A DNA stretch of 64,000 nt from Dimorphilus gyrociliatus. Lineage: Eukaryota > Animalia > Annelida. Below, one piece after another: positions 9,651-64,000 of the stretch (position 1 is the first letter of the stretch; each line of letters starts with the position of its first letter). The notes under the pieces are model-generated. The model worked only from the letters and a program-made list of their open reading frames with translations. It was not told the DNA's origin and did no database searches. The stretch spans positions 536,964 to 600,963 of the forward strand of contig CAJFCJ010000026.1 in assembly GCA_904063045.1 (NCBI GenBank). Direction: 5' to 3'. The position numbers and the translations under genes are program-made.

Positions 9651-10539
9651 TATTCTTTCCAAACAGTTTCCTTCATAAATTTCGATAAAAAGCAAAATAT
9701 TATAAAAACATAAAAATTGTCTGCCAGTCATTCCTCATTCCATTCTATTCGGCTTACTTTAAGAAAAGCGTAACAATAGATCAATGATCAATATGAAGGA
9801 AAACAGTCTGAAACGAAAAAACGGATTAAAACAAGCCAAGATCTTCTTCATATTATGTATGATGCGGTTAATTGAACAAGTGTAGCATCCGATGGCTCTT
9901 TTCATAATTTTTGGTTTAAAACCAAATCTCTTCATTGTCGTCGATTAGGTTTCGTTCAATAAATTTTGGTTTAAACAATATCTTCTTCATGGTCGTCTTT
10001 TCATGAAAATGTCCCTCCAAAATTTACGACTTTCCCATCAGTCTGTTCGTTTTGATAACGAATCTTTCATCTCACATTTTTAGCATCAAGCTGAGTACAA
10101 CTTTGGAACAAAAAAAATCATTTTGCAGAACGAAATCTCCATCTAATTTTAAAATATTTCCACTATTTGATTTGTTTGAAAGGATATAGAAAAGCAGTAA
10201 TTTTGACTAGTTTTATAGTTTCCAATTTATTCCCCATCTACAATTTCAACGATCAGTTCGTCCTCAAAAGTTCTCTTCCATCTTATTTCGTGTTTACCAT
10301 ACTTTTTAATGAACCTTTCATCGATCTACCAATTAGAAGATTCGCTAATGATTACCTCTTTGGATTCATCAAATAGTAGTAACTTTTGTATTTAACAATT
10401 TTATAGCGTCCTTTTTTCTTATCAAGTTTTTCCACTTCTTCATTCCTTTCAGCAGTTCTTCACTTTCGAATGTTCTATTCTACGGTAGTTTCAGTGACGT
10501 CATTTCCGGCTTTTCCCAAATTTTTACTCTAAAAGATGT

Positions 10540-11451
10540 AACATATACTGTATGTGTTGTCGTCGGTATGTAGGTACTAAGTTGGAATAATCTTATATTC
10601 GACAATAATCGCTAATAATTTGAAGGAAATTTGCTGAATAATGAACAATGCAATAGAGAATGAAGTTATGATACAGTCTTTAAGTTTGAATGATACAACG
10701 CCATATCATCACGTGAGTTTGGCATCATGCATTATGACCATCGACTGCACTGGCGAAGGCAATGTAAATAGAGTGGCTTGAGAGGTGGGGGATTGAATTC
10801 CTAATGTCTCTTTCCACCTTATTATGACCTGAATAAATCTGGCATGCCCGTTCCAAAAATTCTTTCGAGATCTATCCTAGTTTCAATTTGTCTCTTACTT
10901 TGTTAAACAGTTTCGTATTCAGCATATTTCGTTCAATCGATTACGTTCATCAGATATTACAAGCTTTTCTTGGGTTGATAGCGAAGTAGTTGTGTTGTAG
11001 CAGAGTTTAGGGCAGTACAGGCTATAAAGGGTGAACTAGTAGCTCCCAATATCCGAATATATCAAGGGTCATGACAGAAGAGAGAAGATGACCTTTCCCA
11101 GTAGGATCTTCGTAGAGGAAACCGAAGTAGAGGAATGTGTACTCTGACGTTCACAAACATTGATTTCATGTGAGTAGTGATGGGCCTGGCAGTAAGACAT
11201 TTAAAGACTGGCTGTGGTACTTGGCATTACGATTCGAACGGTTTCTTTCTTGAGATTCTTAGCGCCGTGATGTGGAAGATAAAATTCAACTTCATCGTCA
11301 GGTACAGGACAAGTGTAATCCTTGTCGAGCAGGGTCTGTATTCCTTTGAACTATTCGGTGTTAAATGTTAGCTTGTCGTCGAATAGATTGAAATCCGCCT
11401 TTAGCCATAGATTTATTATTATGAAGGATGGTTAATAGCACGAATGTCATT

Positions 11452-11482
<31 letters not shown>

Positions 11483-12150
11483 GTTGAACGAAAGTGATGA
11501 ACACTACTGCTCGTTTCTGTGTATGAGATGCAATTTATCATATAGGGTTCTTCGGCGGTTGGAGAGAGAGAGAGGTTCGGTACCAACCGAGTGGGTACTT
11601 GATATACGTGAAACTATTGCGTCGAAACATTTGTAGAGGACCATGATGAGGAGTACAACTGTATACAGCTGGTTGTTTCTTAGTAGGCAATCGACAACGT
11701 AAGCAATATATGTCGTACAATGGATCTAAGTGAGGCAACATTATTTTACTTGTTCTAAGACAACTGGCTGAAACGAGTTGTTCGTATACGATTTGTCAAT
11801 ACAGCATTATTCATCTGGCTTTGGTTTATATGACGTTCGTAGGAGAAATTTACGGCTTATCAAAGACATTGAGGCTCCAGTATCTATTAAGGCAATCATC
11901 TTGCGAATGGTAGATACCTGTTGATGGCACTTGTGCTTCTGTCTCGTAGATAAGCATTCTATCATTGTTGATGTCTGATTGATTGATGCTAACAGGAAGG
12001 GCTGGGCTGGCTGTTGTTGAATCTTTGTGATGGACGGATGTATCGCGTGGTTTGCTTACATTTATCCCAATCAAATTTAGATGAACAATTTACGTTTGTA
12101 TGATCGCTTCGTAGGCAGTTAGATCAACGCTCCAACAATTCAATTAGTCT
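10540..12150 (-). mobile_element. BEL/Pao pol relic inside the left arm (protease and RT fragments)
   Basis: Mirror of 62007-63617, which encodes MIALIDTGASMSLISRKF (aspartyl protease), DEVEFYLPHHGAKNLKKETVRIV and GATSSPFIACTALN (BEL/Pao RT motifs) in broken frames. Confidence 0.85.
11453..11480. repeat. (AG)14 microsatellite (mirror at 62677-62704)
   Basis: Direct reading; same length in both arms. Confidence 0.95.
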
Positions 12151-12499
12151 TTTTTACTCTCTAGGTTCGTTTTTATATACATTTTAACGGCTTTTCTCTC
12201 CAATTTTTCTATTTATTCATTCGTTTCAACAGCTCTCTATTTTCAAAACTCACGTTCTATGGTTATTTCCCCATATTCAGTCATGTCCTTTCCAGCTTTT
12301 TCCAAATGTGATCTAAAATATATTACAAATGCATGTACTGTATATAACGATACTAAAATCATATACATTTTCACTAAATATTTACCCTACGATTTATACT
12401 GCAAATTTCACTTTTGTTGAACAAAAAGATACTTTCCCACTTGCCAGAAAAAAAGGAGAAAGTTTTCAACTTGTTAATTCGACGAATTACATGGAAATC

Positions 12500-12670
12500 A
12501 ATAACGTCACTTCCGGTGAAAGAGCACGAAACAAAGTTCCATCGTAAAAAACATGACCAACTGTAAGCGAGTCATGTTTTTTTTTGCCGAATTATTTATC
12601 GGCTTTTATTTTCAGTTAAAAAAAGGTGCAACATGCAATTTTAGGCCATGTTGCATTTCCTAAGTTACCA
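12500..12670 (+). other. Triple-hairpin element preceded by ACGTCACTTCCGG (ETS-CRE-like motif), copy 1 of 6
   Basis: Stems AAAAAACATGAC/GTCATGTTTTTT (12546-12582), GCCGA/TCGGC (12586-12603), TGCAACATG/CATGTTGCA (12627-12655). Other copies: 17027-17193 (+), 48295-48485 (-), 54255-54435 (-), 56830-56997 (-), 61487-61657 (-). Confidence 0.8.
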
Positions 12671-13699
12671 AAATGAGTGTCAAGTGGGATTGGTGAAGTG
12701 TTTGGAGTGAAGAGAATCATGTTAATCATTTCAAATGAAATGAAAATTGAAATTTTCCGTCTTTTGATTTTTGCGAGATCCTTGAAAAAACTTATTGAAA
12801 AACGTATAAAATCAGAGAAAAATCATCGACAAAATAGAAAACAATCATTGTTTAATTGGACAATGTGATTGTCGAAAGTATTGCGTCTCTTCTGAAAACA
12901 ATCATTGTTTTCTATTGTCGAAAATCTGACAGAGAAAACGACGGGGTCTTCTCAATTTGGTAACTGACAGTCCACCGTCAATTTTTCTCCTATATTTATA
13001 CAAAATAGTCACGTGATAGCCACGTTGCGAGTTGTTGTTGTTGTTGTTTTAATTATAGGCTGAGTTTTGGAACTAATTAATTGGACAATGTGATTGTCGA
13101 AAGTACTGCATCTCTTGTGAAAACATATTGGAAAATGATTATCTAAGATTATTCTGATCTTTTCAATCTTGTACAGTATGATATTGAATTGTTGCTTTGT
13201 GTAAACAGCAAATGACGAAAGAAACTGTTTTTATAGATTTGTGTTCAACTAATAACCGTAGACGACGACGATCACCTCTAACGTTGAACTAAGAGAAAAA
13301 GGGGCAACGGTGAGATAGGGAAAGGACAAATACACTTACCACTCTTACACCTAGTCACACAAATTACAAACAACATTGACATCGCAACGAAAAGGAACAA
13401 ATGCTGGTTTAATCACTGCAAGAACAATGTCGATCAGCAGTGTTGTAAATAGTATAAGAGGAAAGCATCACTATCAAAAAATACCCTCACCTGTACCTCA
13501 TTCCGATAAGCTCCACACATTTGACAAAGAATTGCAGTAGAATACGAATATAGAACATTTTCCTAAGGTTAAAAATCAAGTGTTCCTGTTAATTAAATAA
13601 TAATTACATTGTGTAATAAATTACAAAGGAATGGCTTTTTTCCGTTATTTGTCGGAAAAGCTAGAATTTGTTTGGGATAACTGTCATCGGTTCGCTCAG

Positions 13700-14960
13700 A
13701 TCGTCAGCTACGAAGTTTACTGGACAATGATTCATTTGTTTCTCTTTAGAAGAGATTGTAAGATGCTTTGTTTTCCAAGTTTGATGTCAATAACATTGTT
13801 TTAATGAGACCTATGACTCCCGTCTTGTGTATGCAATATGGTGAATAGCGCGATCGTAGACAGGCAATTACTAGGATGTATACTTTATCATCTGGAATGT
13901 TCCTATATACAGGTCCAGTAACGTCTATGGCGCAATCTTGGAACGGGCTGGTAAATTCCCCGGACTTTCGTTGTCTGCTTCAATTTATCGGACCTTCCAA
14001 GTGTTAAATAGATGCCATCTTCATTTGTTTGACCAGAGGACCTTTATAGTGGCTTTAATAGGTTTGAGTTGTAGAGATGAATGGTGACTAATCTTTAGCT
14101 GCGAGTACTTGATGTAGCCGCAGTGTAAGGTTTTCTAATTCTTCTTCATTGTTTCCAACTAAGATAAGGTCGTCCATATAGAAGGATATGTGATCTTTTC
14201 TTACGGTGACAATATCGATACCAAGCAAGAGGGTAAAGTTATCACGTCTAAACAGAATTCTGTAGAGGACCATGATGAGTAGTGCATTAGTGCAGACCAC
14301 TTCGTAAACAGTTAGAATCGATTGAGGATTTGGTCCAGTCGCCTTTTATCCTCTGATTTCGTATGAATATATGAAGGACAGTAGGCTAAGCATAGATTAT
14401 TGGCTGAACATAGACAATTCGAATTTTTATCCAATGATGGGTTCAGGGGTGCGGTAGTTTTTGGTTCATTAATTTTACTGGATGGTATAGTTTGTGGACT
14501 TCTAACTTTAACCTTGCTCTCTCAATTTGGAGGTTCATCTTCCGTTGCATATCGACATTTGGGAGGCATTTGATTTATAGCATCTTTTCTCAGTATGCTA
14601 ATTCTAGAGTTGGAATTGTAATGAGGAACCTTCGTAATTTCGGCCGGCATTTGAATAAAACGTTCCGTCATTTTCTTGATTCTAACGAATTAGAAATTTT
14701 CGAACGTTGCACAATGTTGTTCTTCAACTGTTAAAGAATTTTCTGGCTCTTGTATTTGAATGTGGATTGATAACTTACATGATTCTTTAGTCGAATTTGT
14801 TAAATGATACGTTCCATTTTGCGCCGTCAATCTCTCCTCCATCACAGTGTTCTCAGTTCTGTTCTGAGCATTCATATACATGAATTTTTCTTCGAATCCT
14901 TTTCTATTCACCTCCAGTTTCTCATCAAGTGCTGATGAGTCGACCATATTGGCCAGTTGG
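13700..14960 (-). mobile_element. Internally deleted BEL/Pao relic (gag-like, RT YMDD, integrase fragment), left arm
   Basis: SFYMDDLILVGNN (same as 50903-51169 ORF), EDGIYLTLGR and PFQDCAIDVTGP (integrase first Asp). Confidence 0.85.
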
Positions 14961-17349
14961 GTAATAATCTCGATAATAATTGAAAATAAATGTGGTAAGG
15001 ATGAATAACGTAGAAAGAGTGAAAGATGTTGTCTTAACTAACGTTCAAATAATATTTTTTCCCGAATTTCATATACAAAATAGTCCCGTGATTGCTGTTT
15101 ATCTAAAGATTATTCCGATCTTTACGATCCTGTAAAAAACGATATTTAATTGTTGCTTTGTGTAAACAGTAAGTGACCAAAATTTCGTCCCAATAAACAA
15201 ACTGTTTTTATAGATTTGTGTTCAACTAATAACCGTAGACGACGACGATCACCGGACATGTTTAACTGAGAGGAAAAAGAAGGACAACTATCAGACAAGG
15301 AAAGGACTAATACACTTACCACTCTTACATCTACTCACACCATTACAAACAACATTGACATGGCAACGAATAGGAACAAATGCTGATTAAATCGCTAAAA
15401 GTACAGTGTCGATCAGCAATGTAGTAAATAGTAACCGTGGAAAGCCTCACAATCAAAAAAGACCCTCATCAGTACTTCATTCCGATAATGTCCACACATT
15501 TGACAAAGAATTCGGGACGGGTGCTTTAACACAGAAAGGATTTTATTTTCAGAATAAATACTAATATTGAACATCTTCCTAAGGTTTTATCACTTCAAAC
15601 AATGGCCGACCATGTTACACAATCAAGCATTGTGTTTTTATAAAAGAGACGCTATTCAAGTGGGTCTGTGAATTAAAGATAAATTACATTGTGTAATAGA
15701 TTAAAAAGGAATGGTTCCTCTCTCTTATTTGTCGAAAAAGCTAGAATGTGTTTTTTTCCTTTCTGATATTAAATTATCCTTTGGTGTAGATAGGAAGTGA
15801 TACAAATTTCTATTTTAATGTTTTACGTATGAAACTTACAAAAATTGATATTCGACAACGATGATTAGGATTTCATCTCACAATTTGAACGATAAGTTCG
15901 TCGTGTTTTTCATTCTTTTTTACTGATTCTTAGAATTGTTGGTATGCAGTATACTAGAAGAATAGAAAAAAAACTCTACTCACTGCTAACTCGTAAGTGA
16001 AACGAAAAACTCTTTGAATGCGTCGAAGATATTCGGCACTTGTTGATACCATCGTCTTCTGGTCAAACATCAGTTGTAATTAATTGCCATTCATTCGTCC
16101 TATAATTATAATCGATAAACTAATTAGAAGATCTGTTAATCATTACGTCTTTGAACAGATCAAACAGTAGCAACTTTTGTATTTAATCGATTTAATTGAT
16201 TAATGTCGAATGTTTCGATAAAATACATATAGCCATGGGTACATAACACTTTGTTATAACAAAGTAAGCGTTTCATCCAACTTTCTTTACAGTATAAACT
16301 TTCAATCAAAAGATTTCAAATATTTCTTATTATCGATAAGAATATTTTAACGGAAAGTCATGGTTTATTGTTAGGATTAATGATTACAGTTTTGTCATTT
16401 TTTCATATAAAGTATTCAATTTTTAATGAAAATGACGTCATTCTTTCATTGTTTCCTACTAAATTTACATGACGATTGAGTTGAAACGGTTATACCTAAC
16501 TTTCTCGGTGTTCGGTGTTCAAGATGATTCAGTTTTAGATTTTATCTTTATCGTTTCTATATTTGCATGAACAAGCGTTATTTTTAATCGATGATAATCA
16601 GACTTCGGTTAATCTTTCAGTTTTATTCTCCAAATGTCGTTTTTTCTTTATTTATACACATGTTACTTTTCTCTTTCTTTTCATTTTTCAGGAAAAACTT
16701 CCTATCTCTTATAACGTCTTTTTTTCTCGAATCTTTCTATTTCTTCATTCCTTTCAGGCGTTCTCTACTTTCGAATGTTCTATTCCACGATTGTTTCTTA
16801 TTTTGAGTGACGTCATTTCCGGCTTTTCCCAAATTTACTTTAAAATATTTTACATGTATAAATATATACTAATATATACTAAAATCACTTTTTTTCCAAA
16901 ATATTTATCCCACGATTTATATAAAAAATTTCACTTTTATCAAACAAAGAGATACTCTGTTAGTTTTCGATGTGTCAGAAGAGAAATTTGTGAATTTGTT
17001 CATTCGGTGAATTACATGGAAATCCATGACGTCACTTCCGGTGAAAGTGAACGCAACAAAGTTGCACCGTAAAAAACATGACCAACTTTAAGCGAGACAT
17101 GTTCTTTTTGCCGAATTATTTATCGGCTTTTATTTTCAGTTAAAAAAAGGTGCAACATGCAATTTTAGGCCATGTTGCATTTCCTAAGTTACCAAAATGA
17201 GTGTCAAGTGGGATTGGTGAAGTGTTTGGAGTGAAGAGAATCATGTTAATCATTTCAAATGAAATGAAAATTGAAATTTTCCGTCTTTTGATTTTTGCGA
17301 GATCTTTGAAAAAACTGCGTAATTATTAACCCAGTTTTGACATTAATCT

Positions 17350-32943: not shown

Positions 32944-33726
32944 ATGAGAGGTGAAGAGGAAAATAATTCATTGGAAATGTGCGATATGACAGAATTAAAT
33001 GAAGAAACGACAACTAGATTGATTAAATTGGTAAAGATAAATCCGATTATTTGGGAATCAATGAGCTGTAATAAAAAGGATGAGGAAGTTGTTTGGAAAG
33101 GTATTGGAAATCAATTAGGACTCACAGGAAATCGAGCTAAGCAAGTATTTGACAAATTAAGAGAATGTTTCTATCAAGATGTTAACCGACAAGACGTGGG
33201 AGATGCTGATAAGTTCGATAAAATTAATCCATATTGGAAATTCTTTCCATTACTTAATTTTCTTAAACCGAAGAAAGCATCCAAACCAATACTGATTAGG
33301 AATCATTCGCCAAGGGAAAAGAGACCAAGAGTAGGAGGTGATTTCGAAGATACGTACGGATCGGAGTCGTTGTCAACTCGAACGTCTACTGCTACTTCTC
33401 CAACTTTTACTGAAGGATCTACAACTACAACGGGAAAGAGAAGAGTTTTTGATGAGAAGGATATGTAAGTTTTTTCTTACCTCAAATTTAGTTGTCTTCA
33501 CCTTCCGATTTTCTTCATTTTCCTTTTCTGTTGTTGTTTTTCTTATAGGCATACGTACTTTATGCAATTCCTAAACGAAAGTAAGAAGAGCATTGACGAA
33601 GATGAGATTTTTGCAAATTTTTTGTATACGGAGATTAAAAAACTACCAACAGCGTCTAAAGATGAGCTAAAATGGAAAATTCATTCTCTAATTAGAGACG
33701 AAAAACAAAGGATCATCTCCTGCTGA
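32944..33726 (+). CDS. MADF-BESS DNA-binding protein, 2 exons (32944-33464, 33549-33726)
   Basis: MADF pattern RLIKLVKINPIIWE...W..IG..LG....KQVFDKLRECF...YWKFFPLLNFL. GTAAGT donor 33465 and TAG acceptor 33548 join in frame to BESS-like DEDEIFANFLYTEIKKLPTASKDELKWKIHSLI. Confidence 0.88.
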
Positions 33727-38290: not shown

Positions 38291-38811
38291 ATGGCGGTAA
38301 TTGGCCATTTTGATGGAATGGATATGAAACGAGGAGGTTCGATTTGCCAGGCAGTAAATTGCTCCAAAACAACAAAGAATAACCGCGAAGTTCACTTTCA
38401 TCGATTTCCAAAAGATATAAATAGGTTTAGTAATTTTATTTTTTTTAAATAATTATTTTCGATTAGGTCGATTTTTATCTCGTATCTCATTTATCGTTAT
38501 CGAATAGAGTAAAGCAATGGGTTTTCGACCTAAGGAATATAAAATTGATTAATGACTTTAAAAGAGATCCAAAAGTATTATGGAATAGAAGAGTATGCTC
38601 TGACCACTTTTCGCCGGATGCTTACACTTCTAAAGATGGTAATAGGCTACTACCAACAGCAAGACCTTTAATAGATAAAAGGATGATTCCTAACATTCAA
38701 ACTACTGATCTTTTTATAAACATTGCTAAGTCAAAAGCAGCAGCGTCTGATAATCCTGTTATTGATACGAAACAAATTGAAGAGAAGAACATGTTCGGTT
38801 GTGAAAGTTGA
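38291..38811 (+). CDS. THAP zinc-finger protein, 2 exons (38291-38424, 38508-38811), ~145 aa
   Basis: CQAVNC...FHRFPKD + RVKQW...VCSDHF...LLPTARP: all C2CH THAP hallmarks once the 83 bp GT-AG intron is removed. Confidence 0.88.
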
Positions 38812-40941
38812 ACAAAAACAAAAAGAACTATGAATATCTTACCTCTCTCATTAACCAGAACATAATTGATTATATAACATTATTGTCAAAGTTTGTAGGC
38901 GTCATAGTCAAGAAGAAAAAGACAAAGTATACATTTCCATTCAAATAAATTAAGGCTTGTAAAACTTAAAGTTTGACATCCATCTTACAAAAAAAATAAG
39001 GATCAGGATAGACTGCATCTCGTTTCTTCATCAAAAATATTTGACTTCGTAATTTCTTCTATTAAATTTCATTGTCACGAATTCTTTTCAAATATACAAT
39101 CAAATTTGATGTTGTAACGTCTCAAAGGATATAACGTTGACATCATACGCATGTCAAATAGTTCAATTGTTAAGATAGCAATCTGATTGTCCCCAAGTTC
39201 CAGCCTCCTTGTCGTCAATAGCCAAAGCTTCCGATTCTTTCACTTCAACTTTCAGTTGACTACCAGTTGATTACTTGGATTCAGCTTTGAGTGAGATGTT
39301 CAAGGAACAACGGATTTTCTCTTATTATAGGCTTTATAATAAGTAATTGATGACTTTTCAAAAAATGATTATACCTGAAACGAAGGAAATAAGGAGTTAA
39401 TGCTTTATATATTCGTTAACTCTTGTTGTAAATTAAATCTTACGGCTTTTTAATCTTGGTCATAATAATTGGTCTTTTTGTAAACCGGTTTAAGTTATTA
39501 GTTGGCTCCAACACTTCCAAGTAAATTTCTTTGAAAACTGTCTGAAAAAATCGTTAATATTAATAGAAAACATATAGTTTACTTTGTCTAAAATATCATT
39601 TTGCCTTTTACTTTGTGATATTAGATCGCAACTATTTAATAAAACTTTATACAATTTTTAATGAAAAACAAAAATTAATCTGTTATGTTTGTTAAGTATT
39701 ACTTTTAATGAATTTATATTCCTGAAACTATATTTGATTTTATATTGAGAAGGATTTTTATTAATACTTACAGAATTCAGTCAGTACAGCAAAACTTTTC
39801 CAAGAACTCCATTGTCCGCCATTTTGAGAAGAAAAATAAACATGCTACAATTTGTATTATTACACCACTTACGTTTTTTTCGTAATTTTTTTAATAGTAA
39901 TTCATAATTAACTATATTTTAACACCTTTTAAGAAACAATAAGATACGAATAAAACATTTTATAATTGCACTACTTTTTTTACGGGTAAAATATTCCGAA
40001 ACTAGTAAACAACTCACTTATTATCGATAATGAATTATTTTCTTATTCCTGCTCGAGATCAGGTTAGAAAATGAAATACTAATAAAAAAATATAAAACTA
40101 TAAATATTAATCGATGACTTCCCCACTGAAAGAACAAGCAACTAATTATATTGAAAATTTTTATATTTTAGCTTTAAAAGAGAAATCGACTAAGTAATAT
40201 ACAAAAACCACTGAATCTCTTTTACTACTGGATGGAAAATTCAACAAGACTAAATATCTAAAAAAAACTCTCAGTGTTATAAATTATATTTATTCATAAT
40301 ATATTTACCAGTTTATATCCTGCAAAGGAAATACTAGTTTACTAGTTTGCACTTCTCCATTTTAAACAAGCAGAGAAGAATAAATCCAGTGATCTTACTA
40401 AAGAAAGCACCGACAAAAAGGACGGATACAGGTTGGCATTGAAGTTTGGGCAACTAACTCTAAAACTAATTAGGATAGTTTTCTAGAACAACAACGATTG
40501 AACCGATGATGATCAATATGATTGCTTTACATATTGAGGATGATGTAGAAAACGTTGCGCTTTCCGATATGATTCTTGGACCTTACTACAATTTTAGTAG
40601 TAACAAAAACCAATAGGCTCAAAAGGCAGATTGCAGTTTGGCAGCTTCCTCCGTTACTTCCGTACACTTCAAATCAGGAATTCCTTATTGATTTATCTTT
40701 GGAAAACGATTGAAATGCTTGGTAATGGAGAACTTGAAAGAGATTATTCGACTCCGAAAGCAAGGTTTATAGAACATAGGAAGAAAGTATAGCAATGCTC
40801 AAGAAGGAAAGAGATACTCCTGCAAGAATAACTAAAGATCAACATTCTACCTTAAATAAACCTGGATATCGTCTCGTACCATTATCAAACGAAGAGTTGC
40901 AGATAACAAGTCATAGCTTTGTATTAGCGACAATATACGAG

Positions 40942-41523
40942 TTATACTTGACCATATCTGAAACACGTAACTAGATGATCATTTATCAGACCGCAGGCTT
41001 GCATATAAGCATACATTATCGTTGATCCACAATATTTAAATCCTCTTTTCTTAAGATCAGCACTCAATTGATCCGATTCTTTACTGGTTGCTGGAACATC
41101 TCCAGTCTTTTCCCATTTGTTTACAATTCTCTTATTGTCTACAAATTTCCAAACATAACTGTCGAACGTTCCAAACTCTTTCTGTATATCTAAGAACAAT
41201 TTTGCGTTCTTAACCGTAGAGTTGATCTTTAGTCGATGCTTTACTATTCCGGGGTTTTTCATAAGATTTTCAATCTTTTCTTCTTTGTATTCCGCTATCT
41301 TCTCAACGTCAAAATTGTCGAAAGCTTCTCTATAAGCTTCTCTCTTCTTTAGAATGGTTCTCCAGTTTAATCCCGCTTGGGCACCCTCAAGCGTCAGAAA
41401 TTCAAAATGAATCCTATCATCGTGAACTGGAACACCCCATTCCTTATCATGGTAGACAATTTCCTCTTCACAGCCAAGGCTCCAATCACACCTGATCAAT
41501 TTGTCCACTTTTCCTTCGGCCAT
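40942..41523 (-). CDS. tag: DNA-3-methyladenine glycosylase I (Tag family), intronless, ~193 aa
   Basis: RCDW...YHDKEWGVP...FEFLTLEGAQAGLNWRTILKKRE.YR.AF...GIVKHRLKI...LKKRGFKYCGSTIMYAYMQACGLINDHLVTC; Zn ligands (Cys, His, His, Cys) and substrate-pocket Glu/Trp present. Likely start ATG 41523 (upstream in-frame ATG 41550). Confidence 0.95.
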   Translation of the reverse strand: MAEGKVDKLIRCDWSLGCEEEIVYHDKEWGVPVHDDRIHFEFLTLEGAQAGLNWRTILKKREAYREAFDNFDVEKIAEYKEEKIENLMKNPGIVKHRLKINSTVKNAKLFLDIQKEFGTFDSYVWKFVDNKRIVNKWEKTGDVPATSKESDQLSADLKKRGFKYCGSTIMYAYMQACGLINDHLVTCFRYGQV

Positions 41524-41844
41524 AGTCCCTATGTTTTTCAACAAGGGCAAAGAAATGCGGGATAATCGACTAACAACCCTAATTTTGACTCTTTACAAAA
41601 TACTCTTGGAAAAAACTGGTATTGAAATCTTTATAATGAAAAGAGATAATGCTTAAGATGAGTGACGCGAAATGTCAATGAACGTTTAGGAAGCGCTTAC
41701 ACTTTGACAATGTTCAGTATTACTTTTCTCCTTGGCCAAAATATCATTTAGTTTTATTCAGTTAATTAAAACTAACAAACAATAAAAAAAGCTTAACGTT
41801 TACATTACAAATATTATATTGACAATGTAGTTCGCTCGGACATA

Positions 41845-43053
41845 TTACATTAATCTTCTCTTAGAACCAAGAATTGAGGGTCCTTTGCGTAATCGTTTCG
41901 ATGATCGAACCCTTTCCTCTTCAAATAGTCCCCTGCGAAATCGCTTAGATGATCGAACAGTTTCCTCCTCGAGTTTATTCCTCTTTTTAGCACTAACGCA
42001 ATCTTGCTTTTGATCTTCAAATAGTTCCTTTCGAAGTTTCTTCTTTTTAGCACAATCTTGTTCTTCGTCTTCAAATAGTTCTATGTCAGATTTGCTCTTT
42101 TTAGGGCTAGCAGTATCTTGGTCTTGGTCTTCATATTGTTCTATGTCAGATTTGCTCTTTTTAGGACTAGCGGTATATTCGTCTTCGTCTTCATTCGGTT
42201 CTACATTGGATTTGCTCTTATCTTGGTGCTCGTCTTCGTCTAGTTTTATGTCGGATTTTTTCTTTTTAGGACTAACAGTATCTTGATCTTCATCTTCAAA
42301 TAGTTCTATTATATCAGGTTCACTCTTTTCAGGGTCAGCAGTATCTTCTTCTTCGTCGTCGTCGTATAGTTCTATTATATCAGGCTCATTTTTTTTAGGG
42401 CTAGCAGTACCTTGATCTTTATCTTCAAATAGTTCTATTATATCAGGTTCACTCTTTTCAGGGTCAGCAGAAGTATCCTCTTCTTCGTCGTCATATAGTT
42501 CTATTATATCAGGCTCGCTCTTTTTAGGACTAGCAGTATTTTGGTCATCATCTTCAAATAGTTCTTTGTCAGATTTGCGCTTTTGAGGACGATTAGTATC
42601 TCGGTCATCGTCTTCAAATAGTTCTATGTCAGATTTGCTTTTTTGAGGACTAGCAGTATCCTGGTCTTTGTGTTCGAATGATACTATGTCAGGTTTCCTT
42701 TTTTTAGGTCCAGAGTAATTCTGATCGAGTTCAGCAAATAGCTCCCTATGAATTTGTAAAGCGTACTGAACATTTTCATCTCTCTCATCCTCCAATTTAC
42801 TGCTATCATAATTCTGCGATTCGTTTCCAAACAGATGAATGAGAAAGTCCCAAAAATCATCATCAGAGCTTCTGTGACTTTGTTCAAGCTTCTTTTCTTT
42901 TTCTAAACACAAAAAATAAATAGTTAGTGGTTTCTTGAGTGGAGTCATTTACATACCGTATTCTTCACTTACGACTTTCGCTATTTCATTGATCCTATCG
43001 ATGAACTCATCAGTCCATTCGCTAAAAAATTGTGCAATTTCATCTTCCGACAT
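41845..43053 (-). CDS. Acidic/basic tandem-repeat protein (~385 aa), 2 exons (43053-42957, 42902-41845)
   Basis: Open frame through ~10-11 repeats of D(I)IELFEDxDQDTASPKKS. The upstream exon MSEDEIAQFFSEWTDEFIDRINEIAKVVSEEY joins in frame via GTATGT donor 42956 and TTTAG acceptor 42903 (54 bp intron). Further 5' exons are possible. Confidence 0.8.
42030..42700 (-). repeat. Coding tandem repeat, 57-66 bp units with an AB-AB higher-order pair
   Basis: Recurring TCTTCAAATAGTTCTAT..TATCAGG..TTTTTAGGACTAGCAGTATC; alternating IIELYDD..ADPEKS and IIELFED..SPKK units. Confidence 0.9.
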
Positions 43054-46000
43054 CACACTCTGAAAACGGATGTCACAATATATTAATTATAGGCGAAAAC
43101 GTTTAGAGAACACCTCCCTTCAACAAGTTCAAGCTAACCATGTCGAAAGGCGGATTTTGTACACGCAATATTTAAATTTTTTCATTAATGCAAAGAAAAC
43201 AATGATATCTTACTGTACTGTTGTTTGGTTGACTTGTATATTCGTTTTCTATATCCTGAAAAGTACCCATATCTTCGGTCATAATTTCTGCATGAAACAA
43301 ACTAAAATATCTCAGTTATTCGATGTCTTTTAAAACTTTTAAGTGCAAAAACTATATAAAAAAAATTACTTTCGAGATGCCTTCGCCAAAAAGCAATTAA
43401 AGAAAAAATAGTAAAAAAAATACTATTTGATATTTATTGTGGAAATTCGAACAGCGTGCATATGAATATCAATATACGAATTGTGCATTACCACATATCC
43501 GGTTATCCAGTTTCCTGTTTCTGTCGCAAATATTCTCATCTTTTTTTTGTTAATCATCTTACAGGTGAAAGGCAGAAAAACTGTATATTATTAAATAATA
43601 ATATTATTTAAATTACTTTTTAAGTTGGAAAATCCGTTTAATACTAAATTTTTGTTAAATACCCCCATTGTCGCTCAAGCATTAAAGTAAAACTGTAGAA
43701 CCAATAAGAGTAAGATCAACATCTTTTTTGATGGAAATCAACTTTGACAATTTGTTTAAACTGGAAATTTTGTATCTATTAATTCTGTACATTGCTTGTT
43801 AATTTTTTAAATTTTAAACGAAACTCATAATCTTTTTCTTTTGAAGTTCACGATTTTGATTTTCCAGTCAATTATATAATTATTAATCAATATTGATTAT
43901 TCCTTGAAGTAAAGTTTTCTTATCTAAATAAGATCCTCATCCTAATTCAAAGTAAAAATATATCATAAAATTAATTTTATAATCTTTTATGCTGATTATA
44001 CTAACAGTATCTTGATCTTCATCTTCAAATAGTTCTATTATATCAGGTTATACTTTTTCTGACGAAGCTTTCAAGTGAACATATGCTCTTTAATCTTTTC
44101 ATTCGCACTTGGAACTTATCTACAAAAACAGTATAAAATGTGCTTTTCAATTTTTCCGATATTATTCAAATAAACGTGATTTAGACACATAATTTCTTTA
44201 GTTACTACATCAGATATTAATATCTATTGTTTCGTAAATATAGTTTTCAATTTACATTTTCTTCTTTCTAAATAAAACACTTCAACGTATAGTTAAAGTA
44301 TATTGTACTTTTATAGTTGCAAAGTAACCATCCTCGATTAATTCATTAAAAGGTGAACTAAATATCATGTATCGTTCAAGGACTTCATTGCTCTCTTGTC
44401 TGGCGGGAAAATATCTATGCCGTCTTTGGGCTAACGACTAATAAAATTATAATTCCAAATAAGAGTGTTTGCTCCTTCCAAATCAACTATCTTTACAGAC
44501 ATTCGTCAATATGACATGTATACGGAGCGTATTTTTTTAAAATCATTGGATTTAAGTATTTCTTTAAATAGTGTTTAAAATTCTTGGTAAAGACTGAAAA
44601 TTATGTTTTTCTTCTTATCTAATAAAGTGTATACAGGAGCTCTTCTTACTTTACAAAATACAACAAGTATATACAATCACTTGTACGCATCTTATCCAGT
44701 TACAACATGCATTACGTCTATAATAAGTAAATATATTGTTTACAGTTTATCGTTTGTGAATCTTGACAAAATTTAATAGTCACATATAATTTCGGAATTG
44801 CATTAGTGTTTCTTGAATATGTTAGAGTAGTTCATTAGTACATTCTTTGAAATTTTCTGTTTGTTACTATAGATTGATATAGAAATAAAGTTTCATATCT
44901 CTTCTTCGCAAAAGCATAACTTCGTCATAAAATTTGTTGAATAAAAATTATTTTGTAGAAATTTAAAGTTCCATTAAGACACATCCATAGAACAAATTGA
45001 ATAAAACATTATAATATTCATATTTTTTAAATACTCCTTCCATAGGATGACATTTTTCCCAATTGTGTACACTTCTATTTTCAACCTTAACGTAATACAG
45101 AATTTTAGAAAAGATTAGGCTTACATCTATATATCTCTTATTTTTCTTTCTGATATTCATTTTAAAAGAATAAAGAATCCAAAATTACTAGTACCTTTCG
45201 ACGTTTTTGCAAAAACTAACCTTTAGTACTCTTATCCAGACCAAGACATTCTAAAGAACATTCTGTTCTTTGTTTCGTATTTAACATTCTTGTTCTTTTT
45301 CTGTTGTATTCCTTCAAAAATTGTCTTTACCAAATAAAAACTATGGATAAATATATTCTTTTTGTTTTTAATAAATTTATAAATACATGACGCTGCATAA
45401 AGATTTTAGAACAAGTTCCAACAGCGTTCGTTCAATGTAATGACGTACGGTCAAAGATGGGAAGTGACGTCATGAGCAGAAGTTTAACTATAGAGAACAG
45501 GTAACCCACTCGTATGAATGCTACTGAACAGAGATCCTCCTTAGTTGCATTGTTTTTTCTTAAAAGAATAATTAAAATTAAGTTTTTAATATTTGAAATA
45601 TTTAATAAACAAACTTTACTCAGTGGGTCATTGCAGCAGATATCATCCATTGATCTGAGGCTTAGCGTAGTAAATTGAACAAATTATACTTGTTATGAAT
45701 AATCTGTTTATAAAAGCAAATTTACTAAAACTAAACCACTTGTTTTTTCTTTGTTTGACGATAACTTGACCTAAATAACCGACATTTTTCTGTAAGTAAT
45801 AAGGAATAGGGTTTCTGTTCTGTAAGCAAGTTTCAAGATTCTAGATATAGTATAATTGCCTTGACATCATAAAGCCATCTTCATACATCTGTCTTTAATG
45901 ATCCATTTCGTCCAAGCTGTCTGTAGAGTTATTATGCTTATTTTACATCCTAATCATTCATTATCATCATCATCATCATCGTCGTCGTCATCATCAATCA

Positions 46001-56500: not shown

Positions 56501-59196
56501 CATTGTCCAATTAATTAGTTCCAAAACTCAGCCAATAATTAAAACAACAACAACAACAACAACTCACAACGTGGCTATCACGTGACTATTTTGTATAAAT
56601 ATAGGAGAAAATTGACGGTGGATTGTCAGTTACCAAATTGAGAAGACCCCGTCGTTTTCTCTGTCAGATTTTTCTCTGATTTTATACGTTTTTCAATAAG
56701 TTTTTTCAAGGATCTCGCAAAAATCAAAAGACGGAAAATTTCAATTTTCATTTTCTTAAACATTTGAAATGATTAACATGATTCTCTTCACTCCAAACAC
56801 TTCACCAATCCCACTTGACACTCATTTTGGTAACTTAGGAAATGCAACATGGCCTAAAATTGCATGTTGCACCTTTTTTTAACTGAAAATAAAAGCCGAT
56901 AAATAATTCGGCAAAAAAAACATGACTCGCTTAAAGTTGGTCATGTTTTTTACGGTGCAACTTTGTTGCGTTCACTTTCACCGGAAGTGACGTCATGGAT
57001 TTCCATGTAATTCACCGAATTAACAAATTCACAAATTTCTCTTCTGACACATCGAAAACTAACAGAGTATCTCTTTGTTTGATAAAAGTGAAATTTTTAT
57101 ATAAATCGTGGGATAAATATTTTGGAAAAAAAGTGATTTTAGTATATATTAGTATATATTTATACATGTAAAATATTTTAAAGTAAATTTGGGAAAAGCC
57201 GGAAATGACGTCACTCAAAATAAGAAACAATCGTGGAATAGAACATTCGAAAGTAGAGAACGCCTGAAAGGAATGAAGAAATAGAAAGATTCGAGAAAAA
57301 AAGACGTTATAAGAGATAGGAAGTTTTTCCTGAAAAATGAAAAGAAAGAGAAAAGTAACATGTGTATAAATAAAGAAAAAACGACATTTGGAGAATAAAA
57401 CTGAAAGATTAACCGAAGTCTGATTATCATCGATTAAAAATAACGCTTGTTCATGCAAATATAGAAACGATAAAGATAAAATCTAAAACTGAATCATCTT
57501 GAACACCGAACACCGAGAAAGTTAGGTATAACCGTTTCAACTCAATCGTCATGTAAATTTAGTAGGAAACAATGAAAGAATGACGTCATTTTCATTAAAA
57601 ATTGAATACTTTATATGAAAAAATGACAAAACTGTAATCATTAATCCTAACAATAAACCATGACTTTCCGTTAAAATATTCTTATCGATAATAAGAAATA
57701 TTTGAAATCTTTTGATTGAAAGTTTATACTGTAAAGAAAGTTGGATGAAACGCTTACTTTGTTATAACAAAGTGTTATGTACCCATGGCTATATGTATTT
57801 TATCGAAACATTCGACATTAATCAATTAAATCGATTAAATACAAAAGTTGCTACTGTTTGATCTGTTCAAAGACGTAATGATTAACAGATCTTCTAATTA
57901 GTTTATCGATTATAATTATAGGACGAATGAATGGCAATTAATTACAACTGATGTTTGACCAGAAGACGATGGTATCAACAAGTGCCGAATATCTTCGACG
58001 CATTCAAAGAGTTTTTCGTTTCACTTACGAGTTAGCAGTGAGTAGAGTTTTTTTTCTATTCTTCTAGTATACTGCATACCAACAATTCTAAGAATCAGTA
58101 AAAAAGAATGAAAAACACGAAATAACATGCAAAACAACTGGACACGACGAACTTATCGTTCAAGGTCTAGATAGGAAATAAATGTAAAACAGTAAACTAA
58201 TTAAAAAGGAACAAAAAGGATATTTAATTAGCAATTACCGCTTTTGTGTACTCCAAAGTTGTACTCAGTTTGATGTCAAATTGTGAGATGAAATCCTAAT
58301 CATCGTTGTCGAATATCAATTTTTGTAAGTTTCATACGTAAAACATTAAAATAGAAATTTGTATCACTTCCTATCTACACCAAAGGATAATTTAATATCA
58401 GAAAGGAAAAAAACACATTCTAGCTTTTCTTAGAGAGAGGAATCATTCCTTTTTAATCTATTACACAATGTAATTTATCTTTAATTAACAGACCCACTTG
58501 ATTAGCGTCTCTTTTATAAAAACACAATGCTTGATTGTGTAACATGGTCGGCCACTGTTTGAAGTGATAAAACCTTAGGAAGATGTTCAATATTAGTATT
58601 TATTCTGAAAATAAAATCCTTTCTGTGTTAAAGCACCCGTCCCGAATTCTTTGTCAAATGTGTGGACATTATCGGAATGAAGTACTGATGAGGGTCTTTT
58701 TTGATTGTGAGGCTTTCCACGGTTACTATTTACTACATTGCTGATCGACACTGTACTTTTAGCGATTTAATCAGCATTTGTTCCTATTCGTTGCCATGTC
58801 AATGTTGTTTGTAATGGTGTGAGTAGATGTAAGAGTGGTAAGTGTATTAGTCCTTTCCTTGTCTGATAGTTGTCCTTCTTTTTCCTCTCAGTTAAACATG
58901 TCCGGTGATCGTCGTCGTCTACGGTTATTAGTTGAACACAAATCTATAAAAACAGTTTGTTTATTGGGACGAAATTTTGGTCACTTACTGTTTACACAAA
59001 GCAACAATTAAATATCGTTTTTTACAGGATCGTAAAGATCGGAATAATCTTTAGATAAACAGCAATCACGGGACTATTTTGTATATGAAATTCGGGAAAA
59101 AATATTATTTGAACGTTAGTTAAGACAACATCTTTCACTCTTTCTACGTTATTCATCCTTACCACATTTATTTTCAATTATTATCGAGATTATTAC

Positions 59197-60457
59197 CCAA
59201 CTGGCCAATATGGTCGACTCATCAGCACTTGATGAGAAACTGGAGGTGAATAGAAAAGGATTCGAAGAAAAATTCATGTATATGAATGCTCAGAACAGAA
59301 CTGAGAACACTGTGATGGAGGAGAGATTGACGGCGCAAAATGGAACGTATCATTTAACAAATTCGACTAAAGAATCATGTAAGTTATCAATCCACATTCA
59401 AATACAAGAGCCAGAAAATTCTTTAACAGTTGAAGAACAACATTGTGCAACGTTCGAAAATTTCTAATTCGTTAGAATCAAGAAAATGACGGAACGTTTT
59501 ATTCAAATGCCGGCCGAAATTACGAAGGTTCCTCATTACAATTCCAACTCTAGAATTAGCATACTGAGAAAAGATGCTATAAATCAAATGCCTCCCAAAT
59601 GTCGATATGCAACGGAAGATGAACCTCCAAATTGAGAGAGCAAGGTTAAAGTTAGAAGTCCACAAACTATACCATCCAGTAAAATTAATGAACCAAAAAC
59701 TACCGCACCCCTGAACCCATCATTGGATAAAAATTCGAATTGTCTATGTTCAGCCAATAATCTATGCTTAGCCTACTGTCCTTCATATATTCATACGAAA
59801 TCAGAGGATAAAAGGCGACTGGACCAAATCCTCAATCGATTCTAACTGTTTACGAAGTGGTCTGCACTAATGCACTACTCATCATGGTCCTCTACAGAAT
59901 TCTGTTTAGACGTGATAACTTTACCCTCTTGCTTGGTATCGATATTGTCACCGTAAGAAAAGATCACATATCCTTCTATATGGACGACCTTATCTTAGTT
60001 GGAAACAATGAAGAAGAATTAGAAAACCTTACACTGCGGCTACATCAAGTACTCGCAGCTAAAGATTAGTCACCATTCATCTCTACAACTCAAACCTATT
60101 AAAGCCACTATAAAGGTCCTCTGGTCAAACAAATGAAGATGGCATCTATTTAACACTTGGAAGGTCCGATAAATTGAAGCAGACAACGAAAGTCCGGGGA
60201 ATTTACCAGCCCGTTCCAAGATTGCGCCATAGACGTTACTGGACCTGTATATAGGAACATTCCAGATGATAAAGTATACATCCTAGTAATTGCCTGTCTA
60301 CGATCGCGCTATTCACCATATTGCATACACAAGACGGGAGTCATAGGTCTCATTAAAACAATGTTATTGACATCAAACTTGGAAAACAAAGCATCTTACA
60401 ATCTCTTCTAAAGAGAAACAAATGAATCATTGTCCAGTAAACTTCGTAGCTGACGAT
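59197..60457 (+). mobile_element. Internally deleted BEL/Pao relic, right arm
   Basis: Mirror of 13700-14960; YMDD at ~59977, PFQDCAIDVTGP at ~60212-60245. Confidence 0.85.
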
Positions 60458-62006
60458 CTGAGCGAACCGATGACAGTTATCCCAAACAAATTCTAGCTTT
60501 TCCGACAAATAACGGAAAAAAGCCATTCCTTTGTAATTTATTACACAATGTAATTATTATTTAATTAACAGGAACACTTGATTTTTAACCTTAGGAAAAT
60601 GTTCTATATTCGTATTCTACTGCAATTCTTTGTCAAATGTGTGGAGCTTATCGGAATGAGGTACAGGTGAGGGTATTTTTTGATAGTGATGCTTTCCTCT
60701 TATACTATTTACAACACTGCTGATCGACATTGTTCTTGCAGTGATTAAACCAGCATTTGTTCCTTTTCGTTGCGATGTCAATGTTGTTTGTAATTTGTGT
60801 GACTAGGTGTAAGAGTGGTAAGTGTATTTGTCCTTTCCCTATCTCACCGTTGCCCCTTTTTCTCTTAGTTCAACGTTAGAGGTGATCGTCGTCGTCTACG
60901 GTTATTAGTTGAACACAAATCTATAAAAACAGTTTCTTTCGTCATTTGCTGTTTACACAAAGCAACAATTCAATATCATACTGTACAAGATTGAAAAGAT
61001 CAGAATAATCTTAGATAATCATTTTCCAATATGTTTTCACAAGAGATGCAGTACTTTCGACAATCACATTGTCCAATTAATTAGTTCCAAAACTCAGCCT
61101 ATAATTAAAACAACAACAACAACAACTCGCAACGTGGCTATCACGTGACTATTTTGTATAAATATAGGAGAAAAATTGACGGTGGACTGTCAGTTACCAA
61201 ATTGAGAAGACCCCGTCGTTTTCTCTGTCAGATTTTCGACAATAGAAAACAATGATTGTTTTCAGAAGAGACGCAATACTTTCGACAATCACATTGTCCA
61301 ATTAAACAATGATTGTTTTCTATTTTGTCGATGATTTTTCTCTGATTTTATACGTTTTTCAATAAGTTTTTTCAAGGATCTCGCAAAAATCAAAAGACGG
61401 AAAATTTCAATTTTCATTTCATTTGAAATGATTAACATGATTCTCTTCACTCCAAACACTTCACCAATCCCACTTGACACTCATTTTGGTAACTTAGGAA
61501 ATGCAACATGGCCTAAAATTGCATGTTGCACCTTTTTTTAACTGAAAATAAAAGCCGATAAATAATTCGGCAAAAAAAAACATGACTCGCTTACAGTTGG
61601 TCATGTTTTTTACGATGGAACTTTGTTTCGTGCTCTTTCACCGGAAGTGACGTTATTGATTTCCATGTAATTCGTCGAATTAACAAGTTGAAAACTTTCT
61701 CCTTTTTTTCTGGCAAGTGGGAAAGTATCTTTTTGTTCAACAAAAGTGAAATTTGCAGTATAAATCGTAGGGTAAATATTTAGTGAAAATGTATATGATT
61801 TTAGTATCGTTATATACAGTACATGCATTTGTAATATATTTTAGATCACATTTGGAAAAAGCTGGAAAGGACATGACTGAATATGGGGAAATAACCATAG
61901 AACGTGAGTTTTGAAAATAGAGAGCTGTTGAAACGAATGAATAAATAGAAAAATTGGAGAGAAAAGCCGTTAAAATGTATATAAAAACGAACCTAGAGAG
62001 TAAAAA

Positions 62007-62674
62007 AGACTAATTGAATTGTTGGAGCGTTGATCTAACTGCCTACGAAGCGATCATACAAACGTAAATTGTTCATCTAAATTTGATTGGGATAAATGTA
62101 AGCAAACCACGCGATACATCCGTCCATCACAAAGATTCAACAACAGCCAGCCCAGCCCTTCCTGTTAGCATCAATCAATCAGACATCAACAATGATAGAA
62201 TGCTTATCTACGAGACAGAAGCACAAGTGCCATCAACAGGTATCTACCATTCGCAAGATGATTGCCTTAATAGATACTGGAGCCTCAATGTCTTTGATAA
62301 GCCGTAAATTTCTCCTACGAACGTCATATAAACCAAAGCCAGATGAATAATGCTGTATTGACAAATCGTATACGAACAACTCGTTTCAGCCAGTTGTCTT
62401 AGAACAAGTAAAATAATGTTGCCTCACTTAGATCCATTGTACGACATATATTGCTTACGTTGTCGATTGCCTACTAAGAAACAACCAGCTGTATACAGTT
62501 GTACTCCTCATCATGGTCCTCTACAAATGTTTCGACGCAATAGTTTCACGTATATCAAGTACCCACTCGGTTGGTACCGAACCTCTCTCTCTCTCCAACC
62601 GCCGAAGAACCCTATATGATAAATTGCATCTCATACACAGAAACGAGCAGTAGTGTTCATCACTTTCGTTCAAC

Positions 62675-62705
<31 letters not shown>

Positions 62706-63617
62706 AATGACATTCGTGCTATTAACCATCCTTCATAATAATAAATCTATGGCTAAAGGCGGATTTCAATCTATTCGACGACAAGCTAACATTTAACACC
62801 GAATAGTTCAAAGGAATACAGACCCTGCTCGACAAGGATTACACTTGTCCTGTACCTGACGATGAAGTTGAATTTTATCTTCCACATCACGGCGCTAAGA
62901 ATCTCAAGAAAGAAACCGTTCGAATCGTAATGCCAAGTACCACAGCCAGTCTTTAAATGTCTTACTGCCAGGCCCATCACTACTCACATGAAATCAATGT
63001 TTGTGAACGTCAGAGTACACATTCCTCTACTTCGGTTTCCTCTACGAAGATCCTACTGGGAAAGGTCATCTTCTCTCTTCTGTCATGACCCTTGATATAT
63101 TCGGATATTGGGAGCTACTAGTTCACCCTTTATAGCCTGTACTGCCCTAAACTCTGCTACAACACAACTACTTCGCTATCAACCCAAGAAAAGCTTGTAA
63201 TATCTGATGAACGTAATCGATTGAACGAAATATGCTGAATACGAAACTGTTTAACAAAGTAAGAGACAAATTGAAACTAGGATAGATCTCGAAAGAATTT
63301 TTGGAACGGGCATGCCAGATTTATTCAGGTCATAATAAGGTGGAAAGAGACATTAGGAATTCAATCCCCCACCTCTCAAGCCACTCTATTTACATTGCCT
63401 TCGCCAGTGCAGTCGATGGTCATAATGCATGATGCCAAACTCACGTGATGATATGGCGTTGTATCATTCAAACTTAAAGACTGTATCATAACTTCATTCT
63501 CTATTGCATTGTTCATTATTCAGCAAATTTCCTTCAAATTATTAGCGATTATTGTCGAATATAAGATTATTCCAACTTAGTACCTACATACCGACGACAA
63601 CACATACAGTATATGTT
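62007..63617 (+). mobile_element. BEL/Pao pol relic inside the right arm
   Basis: DTGA protease motif ~62270-62290; FYLPHH...RIV ~62860-62930; GATSSPF ~63108-63135. Confidence 0.85.
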
Positions 63618-64000
63618 ACATCTTTTAGAGTAAAAATTTGGGAAAAGCCGGAAATGACGTCACTGAAACTACCGTAGAATAGAACATTCGAAAGTGAAGA
63701 ACTGCTGAAAGGAATGAAGAAGTGGAAAAACTTGATAAGAAAAAAGGACGCTATAAAATTGTTAAATACAAAAGTTACTACTATTTGATGAATCCAAAGA
63801 GGTAATCATTAGCGAATCTTCTAATTGGTAGATCGATGAAAGGTTCATTAAAAAGTATGGTAAACACGAAATAAGATGGAAGAGAACTTTTGAGGACGAA
63901 CTGATCGTTGAAATTGTAGATGGGGAATAAATTGGAAACTATAAAACTAGTCAAAATTACTGCTTTTCTATATCCTTTCAAACAAATCAAATAGTGGAAA

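Follow-up and report, generated by a model that had tools for sequence, protein, structure and literature searches.

A bacterial-type 3-methyladenine DNA glycosylase gene in the annelid Dimorphilus gyrociliatus and its probable origin in an old bacterium-to-animal transfer

How does a gene for 3-methyladenine DNA glycosylase I (Tag) come to lie among the spliced genes of a miniature annelid? Tag is typical of bacteria and plants, and most animals repair 3-methyladenine via AAG/MPG. The gene in question is an intronless open reading frame (ORF) in a 64,000-nucleotide stretch of the Dimorphilus gyrociliatus genome, here called the window (positions 536,964 to 600,963 of contig CAJFCJ010000026.1, forward strand). 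The 73.8-Mb genome of this species was published in 2020 in a paper that says nothing of Tag or of any gene transfer in the worm (PMC7854359). In a 2016 survey the Tag family, there named "MDG I" (PF03352), was not in animals, was in plants and was sporadic in other eukaryotes (PMC4860697). An initial annotation of the window had raised horizontal acquisition and patchy retention as possible origins. We consider it very probable that Tag was transferred long ago from a bacterium into an ancestor of at least two animals, the second being the source of a protein that we call P0002, and that it was domesticated as a base-excision-repair glycosylase with a predicted activity.

The Tag reading frame starts at an ATG at 41523-41521, in the context ACTATGG, and stops at a TAA at 40944-40942, giving a product of 193 amino acids. 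The longer frame that had been listed mechanically on the minus strand (40942-41550, 202 amino acids) is a TTG-extended form of the Tag frame, and the ATG at 41523 is taken as the sensible start. No upstream ATG exists in the 92 nt of RNA-covered leader. Among 20,000 random sequences matched in composition, none had an open frame of 193 codons. The initial description of an intact, intronless gene is borne out by the full-length PF03352 match, by the 193-codon frame from an ATG and by the RNA-like contigs X2#11 and X4#21/22, which span the ORF gap-free. It was likewise right that Tag is AT-rich like its neighbors: its GC content is 0.38, and 0.36 at third codon positions (GC3), inside the ranges of the host exons in the window (GC 0.33-0.42, GC3 0.27-0.46). 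As a signal of transfer, base composition is uninformative, since the GC content of Tag fits both the host exons and the AT-rich end of the bacterial range.

The product matches Pfam PF03352 (Adenine_glyco) at 269.9 bits (cutoff 25, E=1.3e-80) over profile positions 6-176 of 177, and its sequence matches in the PDB are the TAG of Salmonella typhi (2ofi/2ofk, E~9e-54) and that of E. coli (1lmz, E=7e-52). An AlphaFold model built with 32 homologs has a mean pLDDT of 92.4 and superposes on 2OFK and 2OFI with TM-scores of 0.90 and 0.95 and a root-mean-square deviation (rmsd) of 1.1-1.4 Å. The best fold matches in the PDB are all TAG (TM 0.84-0.95, rmsd 1.1-2.0 Å), the next fold, MagIII, reaching TM 0.39, and a look-alike search of the ESM Atlas returned bacterial Tag clusters only. 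Residue numbering was checked against the fetched E. coli tag (b3549), and the zinc ligands and pocket residues pointed out in the initial annotation are present in that alignment, all four ligands as well as the Trp/Tyr/Glu/Trp pocket. What we take, from the structures of TAG, to be the structural zinc site (Cys4-His17-His175-Cys179 in E. coli numbering) corresponds to C12/H25/H183/C187 in the worm protein; these columns are invariant across 271 bacterial relatives and are also kept in P0002. Presumably the 3-methyladenine pocket and DNA wedge are formed by Trp6, Tyr16, Glu38, Gln41, Gly43, Leu44 and Trp46 of the E. coli enzyme, which correspond to W14/Y24/E46/Q49/G51/L52/W54 and are kept in both animal copies. 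Among the 271 bacterial relatives, 75 columns reach a conservation of 95% or more; the worm protein keeps 70 of them and P0002 keeps 67. Judged by its sequence, the ORF is a complete Tag and a predicted enzyme.

The closest relatives of the worm protein are bacterial, with a single exception. Two word-indexed searches of 5.8 billion proteins, in which 8000 candidates were scored and at least 120 matches obtained per search, listed after the worm protein itself P0002, an animal protein of 70% identity, followed by bacterial Tags, numbering in the hundreds, at 60-69%; P0002 is the only other close animal copy among the matches listed. In the species genomes of GTDB, the best 80 loci are nearly all from Bacteroidota and Balneolaceae at 55-66% identity, the Bacteroidota being mostly Cytophagales, e.g. 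Cyclobacteriaceae, Roseivirga, Ohtaekwangia and Marivirga. Identity to E. coli Tag is 46%, compared with 58-69% to the nearest Bacteroidota-type Tags. A profile of the two animal proteins scores its own members at 425 and 419 bits and the next match, the bacterial protein P0008, at 319 bits, and no further member of the animal clade was found between 419 and 319 bits among the matches listed from the 5.8 billion proteins. P0008, the nearest bacterial Tag, is encoded on a gene-dense bacterial contig of 34.6% GC with SusC-like, SurE and MsrB genes. Its locus (L085 10001-10573) is that of an AT-rich Bacteroidota-like organism and is found in SRR33677534/554/562.

A maximum-likelihood tree of 60 taxa (LG+C20+F+G4, UFBoot/SH-aLRT support, 195 columns, rooted on E. 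coli), in which the two animal copies are the only eukaryotic Tags, places the worm protein and P0002 as sisters at 100/98 and joins this pair to P0008 at 98/91, inside the Bacteroidota-type cluster. A quick tree of 140 taxa agrees. The donor was presumably a Bacteroidota-type bacterium of the Cytophagales/Balneolaceae kind. Of the two origins put forward in the initial annotation, horizontal acquisition is therefore favored, the bacterial relatives being 58-69% identical and the sole other animal copy among the matches listed being the sister of the worm gene.

P0002 is encoded on a 34.6-kb contig of 29% GC assembled from SRR23372229, and is also present in SRR23372215/216. On this contig TUDOR, NACHT-like, TRPM, M14-peptidase, zinc-finger and MADF genes are broken into pieces the size of exons, and because of these animal-type genes we regard it as another animal's. 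P0002 lies 376 bp upstream of the MADF gene, head-to-tail (L001 799-2570 / L088 18367-20138). Exon 2 of that MADF gene is 81% identical over 57 amino acids to window positions 33550-33720, and its MADF domain is 36% identical over 94 amino acids to the window ORF at 32944-33468; by these comparisons the MADF genes of the two loci appear to be orthologous and provide an anchor of synteny. In D. gyrociliatus, Tag and MADF converge across 7.2 kb of sequence that includes a THAP gene, so the head-to-tail arrangement at 376 bp implies an inversion or insertion since the split. The two animal proteins also have K95, H96, Y164, R55 and C18 in common, in columns that are otherwise invariant or nearly so in the bacteria (n=271). 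The bacterial invariant R-N pair at 95-96 is K-H in both, and Tyr takes the place of the Phe in the hairpin motif GFKF. A sister pair with these residues in common, together with the MADF synteny, therefore argues for a single acquisition before the two animals diverged.

The gene appears to have been constrained for a long time since that acquisition. When the two animal genes are compared over 188 codons, differences fall at 97.6 of 107.2 synonymous sites (pS 0.91, saturated) and at 77.4 of 456.8 non-synonymous sites (pN 0.17). The ratio dN/dS fails with both NG86 and YN00 as dS is saturated, and the raw pS and pN were used. Intact ORFs in both animals despite saturated synonymous sites and a pN of 0.17 therefore indicate long purifying selection. 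It had been suggested at the outset that the gene stays intact because of selection, and the comparison with P0002 supports this; the accompanying statement that most of the neighboring sequence is decayed is incorrect, as Tag is surrounded by normal animal genes that have short introns, are spliced and are transcribed.

Tag is integrated in the worm genome. It lies on the 865,716-bp contig CAJFCJ010000026.1 of assembly GCA_904063045.1, the sole place in the collection searched that encodes exactly this protein. An independent Logan short-read contig of 4,428 nt, from the probable source run, spans 39000-42094 without differences; it holds Tag together with 1.9 kb of downstream flank and 0.57 kb of upstream flank, which reaches into the 3′ end of the neighboring gene, and has a k-mer depth of 266 compared with 215 for the adjoining flank contig. 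The window also carries an ADAMTS exon, the MADF gene and the two-exon THAP gene. When the sister bacterial locus was compared by tblastx with the window and with the contig of the second animal, no similarity was found beyond the borders of the coding sequence (CDS). A co-transferred bacterial flank is rejected, the similarity ending exactly at the CDS borders, and the Tag ORF is apparently all that survives from the donor.

The transcription of Tag was examined with X2, X3 and X4, which are contigs from three runs of two studies, X2 coming from a different study of 2017 with another organism label. The run type is a guess made by the tool, and the RNA nature of the contigs is taken from the introns missing from them: eight intervals, 54-230 nt long, bounded by GT..AG or CT..AC. 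The median intron of D. gyrociliatus is 66 bp (PMC7854359). The skipped intervals fit this length, and X2-X4 are therefore likely to be RNA assemblies. Their cover of the Tag ORF is complete and unbroken, with 100% identity (X2 40485-41608; X4 up to 41615). According to the initial annotation, a spliced gene of the same orientation as Tag lies about 300 bp away; the distance from the Tag ATG to the stop of the upstream minus-strand gene (41845) is 321 nt, and the introns of that gene are seen in the RNA-like contigs. No RNA joins Tag to the upstream gene in the X2, X3 and X4 contigs, and the uncovered stretch between them suggests that Tag is its own transcription unit. A second intergenic stretch without RNA-contig cover lies at 39835-40001. 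Sense transcription of Tag is likely because of the minus-strand TATAAA and the sharp 5′ boundary at 41608-41615, and the gene probably forms a single-exon transcription unit with a TATA-type promoter of its own, presumably on the minus strand.

A plus-strand spliced RNA converges on the 3′ end of Tag, and the RNA assemblies hold both in one contig. A plus-strand coding gene across 40002-40960 was rejected, as neither exon contains a long ORF in any reading frame. The plus-strand RNA is probably a convergent, non-coding transcript that overlaps the 3′ untranslated region (UTR) of Tag and was hence merged with it by the assemblers. It may be a natural antisense or an overlapping non-coding transcript. 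RNA contigs of the two studies exit the window sequence at 40109 and 40314; the letters of their continuations are found nowhere in the 64-kb window and may represent exons elsewhere or a paralogous locus.

We propose the following scheme for the origin and function of the worm enzyme. Tag would have been captured from a Bacteroidota-type donor in an ancestor common to D. gyrociliatus and at least one other animal. The 22-kDa protein would be small enough for passive entry into the nucleus, where it would bind DNA through a helix-hairpin-helix fold stabilized by the Cys/His/His/Cys zinc site. N3-methyladenine, and 3-methylguanine, would be flipped into the Trp14/Tyr24/Glu46/Trp54 pocket and the glycosidic bond cut, and the resulting abasic site would be passed to the base-excision repair of the host. 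A bolder proposal, which we regard as unlikely, is that Tag is the main or a re-specialized alkyl-base glycosylase in the gene-poor Dimorphilus lineage, either replacing a lost MPG/AAG or having a substrate range altered by changes in the pocket, with the convergent plus-strand RNA perhaps acting as a regulator. The residues behind this proposal are the replacement of Tyr13 by Glu or Asp and of R-N by K-H at 95-96, replacements that are fixed in the two animals and essentially absent from the 271 bacteria.

Several observations weigh against an old transfer followed by domestication. The RNA-like contigs are strandless and the plus-strand spliced RNA overlaps the 3′ end of Tag; a canonical minus-strand poly(A) signal was not found between the Tag stop and 40294. 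At the position of Tyr13 of the E. coli enzyme, 265 of the 271 bacterial relatives have Tyr, whereas the worm protein has Glu (Glu21) and P0002 has Asp; five of the bacteria lack this Tyr as well. The worm protein scores 205.9 bits against TIGR00624 (subfamily), below the cutoff of 232.5, and 204.7 against NF007678 (equivalog), below the cutoff of 349. However, the nearest bacterial Tags reach just 224-234 with these NCBIfam Tag models, compared with 324 and 433 for E. coli Tag, and the models therefore mainly gauge distance from the enterobacterial enzyme. As to the phylogeny, the approximately unbiased (AU) test keeps a tree in which the animal pair stands beside the E. coli outgroup, apart from every Bacteroidota-type sequence (delta lnL 16.8, p=0.18), so strict nesting within the Bacteroidota is unproven at 195 columns; the animal pair supplies the only eukaryotic Tags of the tree. 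The phylogeny proposed as a check in the initial annotation thus yielded a well-supported bacterial sister for the animal pair, the position of that pair among all bacterial and eukaryotic Tags being less firmly fixed.

The first group of these observations would suit a functionless integrated relic whose RNA is read-through or the antisense of the plus-strand spliced transcript. The intron of that transcript, with its plus-strand GT..AG borders at 40432-40486, is found in the RNA contig that holds the Tag ORF, the minus strand has no canonical poly(A) signal near the Tag stop, and a Tyr that lines the pocket (Tyr13) has been replaced. Yet a relic is improbable given full-length ORFs in two species whose synonymous sites are saturated at a pN of 0.17, with most of the near-invariant columns (70/75 and 67/75) kept. 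Moreover, the RNA cover stops sharply at 41608/41615, just downstream of the minus-strand TATAAA and without a plus-strand poly(A) signal there; the next such signals, at 41765 and 41781, are both inside the uncovered gap, and plus-strand-only transcription for these reasons fits poorly.

It is still less probable that Tag is an ancient eukaryotic or metazoan gene, inherited vertically and lost in most animals. Such retention would accord with the presence of the family in plants and its sporadic occurrence in other eukaryotes (PMC4860697), the AU test allows a place for the animal pair outside the Bacteroidota-type cluster, and the tree contains the two animal copies as its only eukaryotic Tags. 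However, Tags of Cytophagales and Balneolaceae are 58-69% identical to the worm protein (E. coli Tag: 46%), closer than a split at the eukaryotic root would allow, and the bacterial sister is supported at 98/91. There are no animal members between 419 and 319 bits among the matches listed, and the gene is intronless in an annelid that keeps many ancestral introns (PMC7854359). Four points therefore speak against vertical inheritance: a single group of bacteria is highly similar, the sister is bacterial, those matches include no other animal members, and introns are absent.

Separate acquisitions by the two animals, each from a similar bacterium, would explain why the 70% identity between the animal copies is barely above the 68-69% to the nearest bacterium. 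This is nevertheless a very remote prospect, because the animal copies are sisters at 100/98, five residues that they have in common are unseen or nearly so in the 271 bacterial relatives, and both copies lie near an orthologous MADF gene. Contamination or mis-assembly, in which a bacterial ORF was wrongly joined to animal DNA, might be suspected of an intronless ORF with bacterial closest relatives in a project from which bacterial contigs had to be removed (PMC7854359), and the initial annotation had asked whether reads link it to the flanking spliced genes, but this explanation has virtually no likelihood left and is ruled out by the agreement of the 865-kb contig, the independent short-read contig with both flanks at like depth and the identical sequence in RNA-like assemblies of a second study, by the bacterial similarity that stops at the CDS ends, and by the 70%-identical copy beside the orthologous MADF gene on the 34.6-kb contig of the other animal.

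An old transfer followed by domestication can be compared with what is known of Tag and of foreign repair genes in animals. Bacterial Tags (E. coli b3549; Salmonella typhi 2OFI/2OFK; S. aureus 4AIA) are like the worm protein in their PF03352 domain, their length of about 190 amino acids and the predicted fold, and have in common with it the Cys/His/His/Cys zinc site, the Trp6/Tyr16/Glu38/Trp46 pocket and the Gly43-Leu44 wedge. Unlike them, the worm gene lies in an animal chromosome in a eukaryote-type promoter context. Unlike E. coli Tag in particular, to which it is 46% identical, the worm protein has Glu in place of Tyr13, the lineage-specific residues K95/H96/Y164/R55/C18 and a TIGR00624 score below the cutoff. 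The closest Tags, at 58-69%, are those of marine and soil Bacteroidota (Cyclobacteriaceae, Roseivirga, Marivirga, Ohtaekwangia, Peijinzhouia) and of Balneolaceae; they differ in their gene-dense, operon-like contexts, and none has the animal-specific substitutions. Animal AAG/MPG (PF02245) and Tag have a presumed substrate, 3-methyladenine, and base-excision repair in common, while fold and family are unrelated.

The nearest precedent is the set of AlkD, Fpg, UVDE and LigK genes of bdelloid rotifers, which are likewise repair genes of bacterial or other non-metazoan origin, including an alkylpurine glycosylase, that are integrated and expressed in a microscopic invertebrate (Hecox-Lea and Mark Welch 2018, PMC6264785). 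Tag is not among the bdelloid set. The annelid host belongs to another phylum and, unlike the rotifers, is not known for massive transfer or desiccation tolerance. Transfer of Tag is mentioned for anaerobic gut fungi. No report of a transfer of Tag into an annelid or any animal was found in the literature searched, the supplement of a 2026 compendium of metazoan transfers lying outside it. The transfer of a plant "MAG" described by Fang et al. 2017 was rejected as a precedent, as it concerns the unrelated family PF02245. The worm Tag is thus a solid case of a kind of bacterium-to-animal transfer that is not unprecedented, with no new mechanism or kind of element. In a family reported as absent from animals (PMC4860697), it is a gene that is integrated, transcribed (presumably in the sense direction), present in two species and long constrained. 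D. gyrociliatus can be cultured in the laboratory and its genome is compact and well assembled, which makes it tractable for asking what a bacterial alkylation-repair enzyme gives to an animal.

The features of the locus are collected in Table 1.

Table 1 Features around the Tag gene, in window coordinates
Feature	Position	Strand	Description and evidence
Tag CDS	40942..41523	minus	193 codons + TAA, intronless; ORF list, PF03352, PDB matches, model, RNA-like contigs
Putative 5′ UTR of Tag	41524..41615	minus	RNA-like contig ends at 41608 (X2) and 41615 (X4); 92-nt leader without ATG; strand presumed
TATAAA box, candidate core promoter	41630..41635	minus	consensus match only; 15-27 nt upstream of RNA-contig ends
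Intergenic gap between Tag and upstream spliced gene	41672..41838	.	zero depth in X2, X3 and X4
Spliced RNA without long ORF	40170..40885	plus	GT..AG intron 40432-40486 (55 nt), AATAAA 40855-40860
Upstream neighbor, acidic repeat protein, multi-exon	41845..43900	minus	last exon 41845-42902; RNA-like contigs
THAP-domain gene, downstream neighbor	38291..38811	plus	exons 38291-38449, 38545-38808
MADF-domain gene	32944..33720	plus	exons 32944-33468, 33550-33720

The window also contains an inverted repeat with arms at 10157-17279 and 56743-64000, at least 7 kb long and 97-100% identical, the right arm exiting the window. Its spacer of about 39.5 kb encloses the ADAMTS exon, MADF, THAP and Tag, the last lying 23.7 kb and 15.2 kb from the arms. 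The inverted repeat has two readings, one being inverted duplication or gene conversion in the very recent past and the other a fold-back artifact of the assembly. The initial annotation had supposed that Tag may have been carried by this structure, an idea that we reject: the arms are far away, no repeat flanks Tag within 5 kb, and the Tag locus of the second animal has no similarity to the arms. At 97-100% identity the arms are very young or an artifact, whereas Tag predates a split with saturated synonymous divergence. No tRNA or Rfam features were found in the window.

The upstream neighbor of Tag has at least four short introns, with CT..AC ends at 42903-42956, 43060-43213, 43302-43369 and 43761-43824, and no Pfam match was found for its product. 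The protein is very acidic and is made up of about 10 repeats of 20 amino acids (60 nt) of the type PKKSKSDIELFEDD. A 50-nt piece of the sequence encoding this repeat recurs at 44000-44049 with 100% identity.

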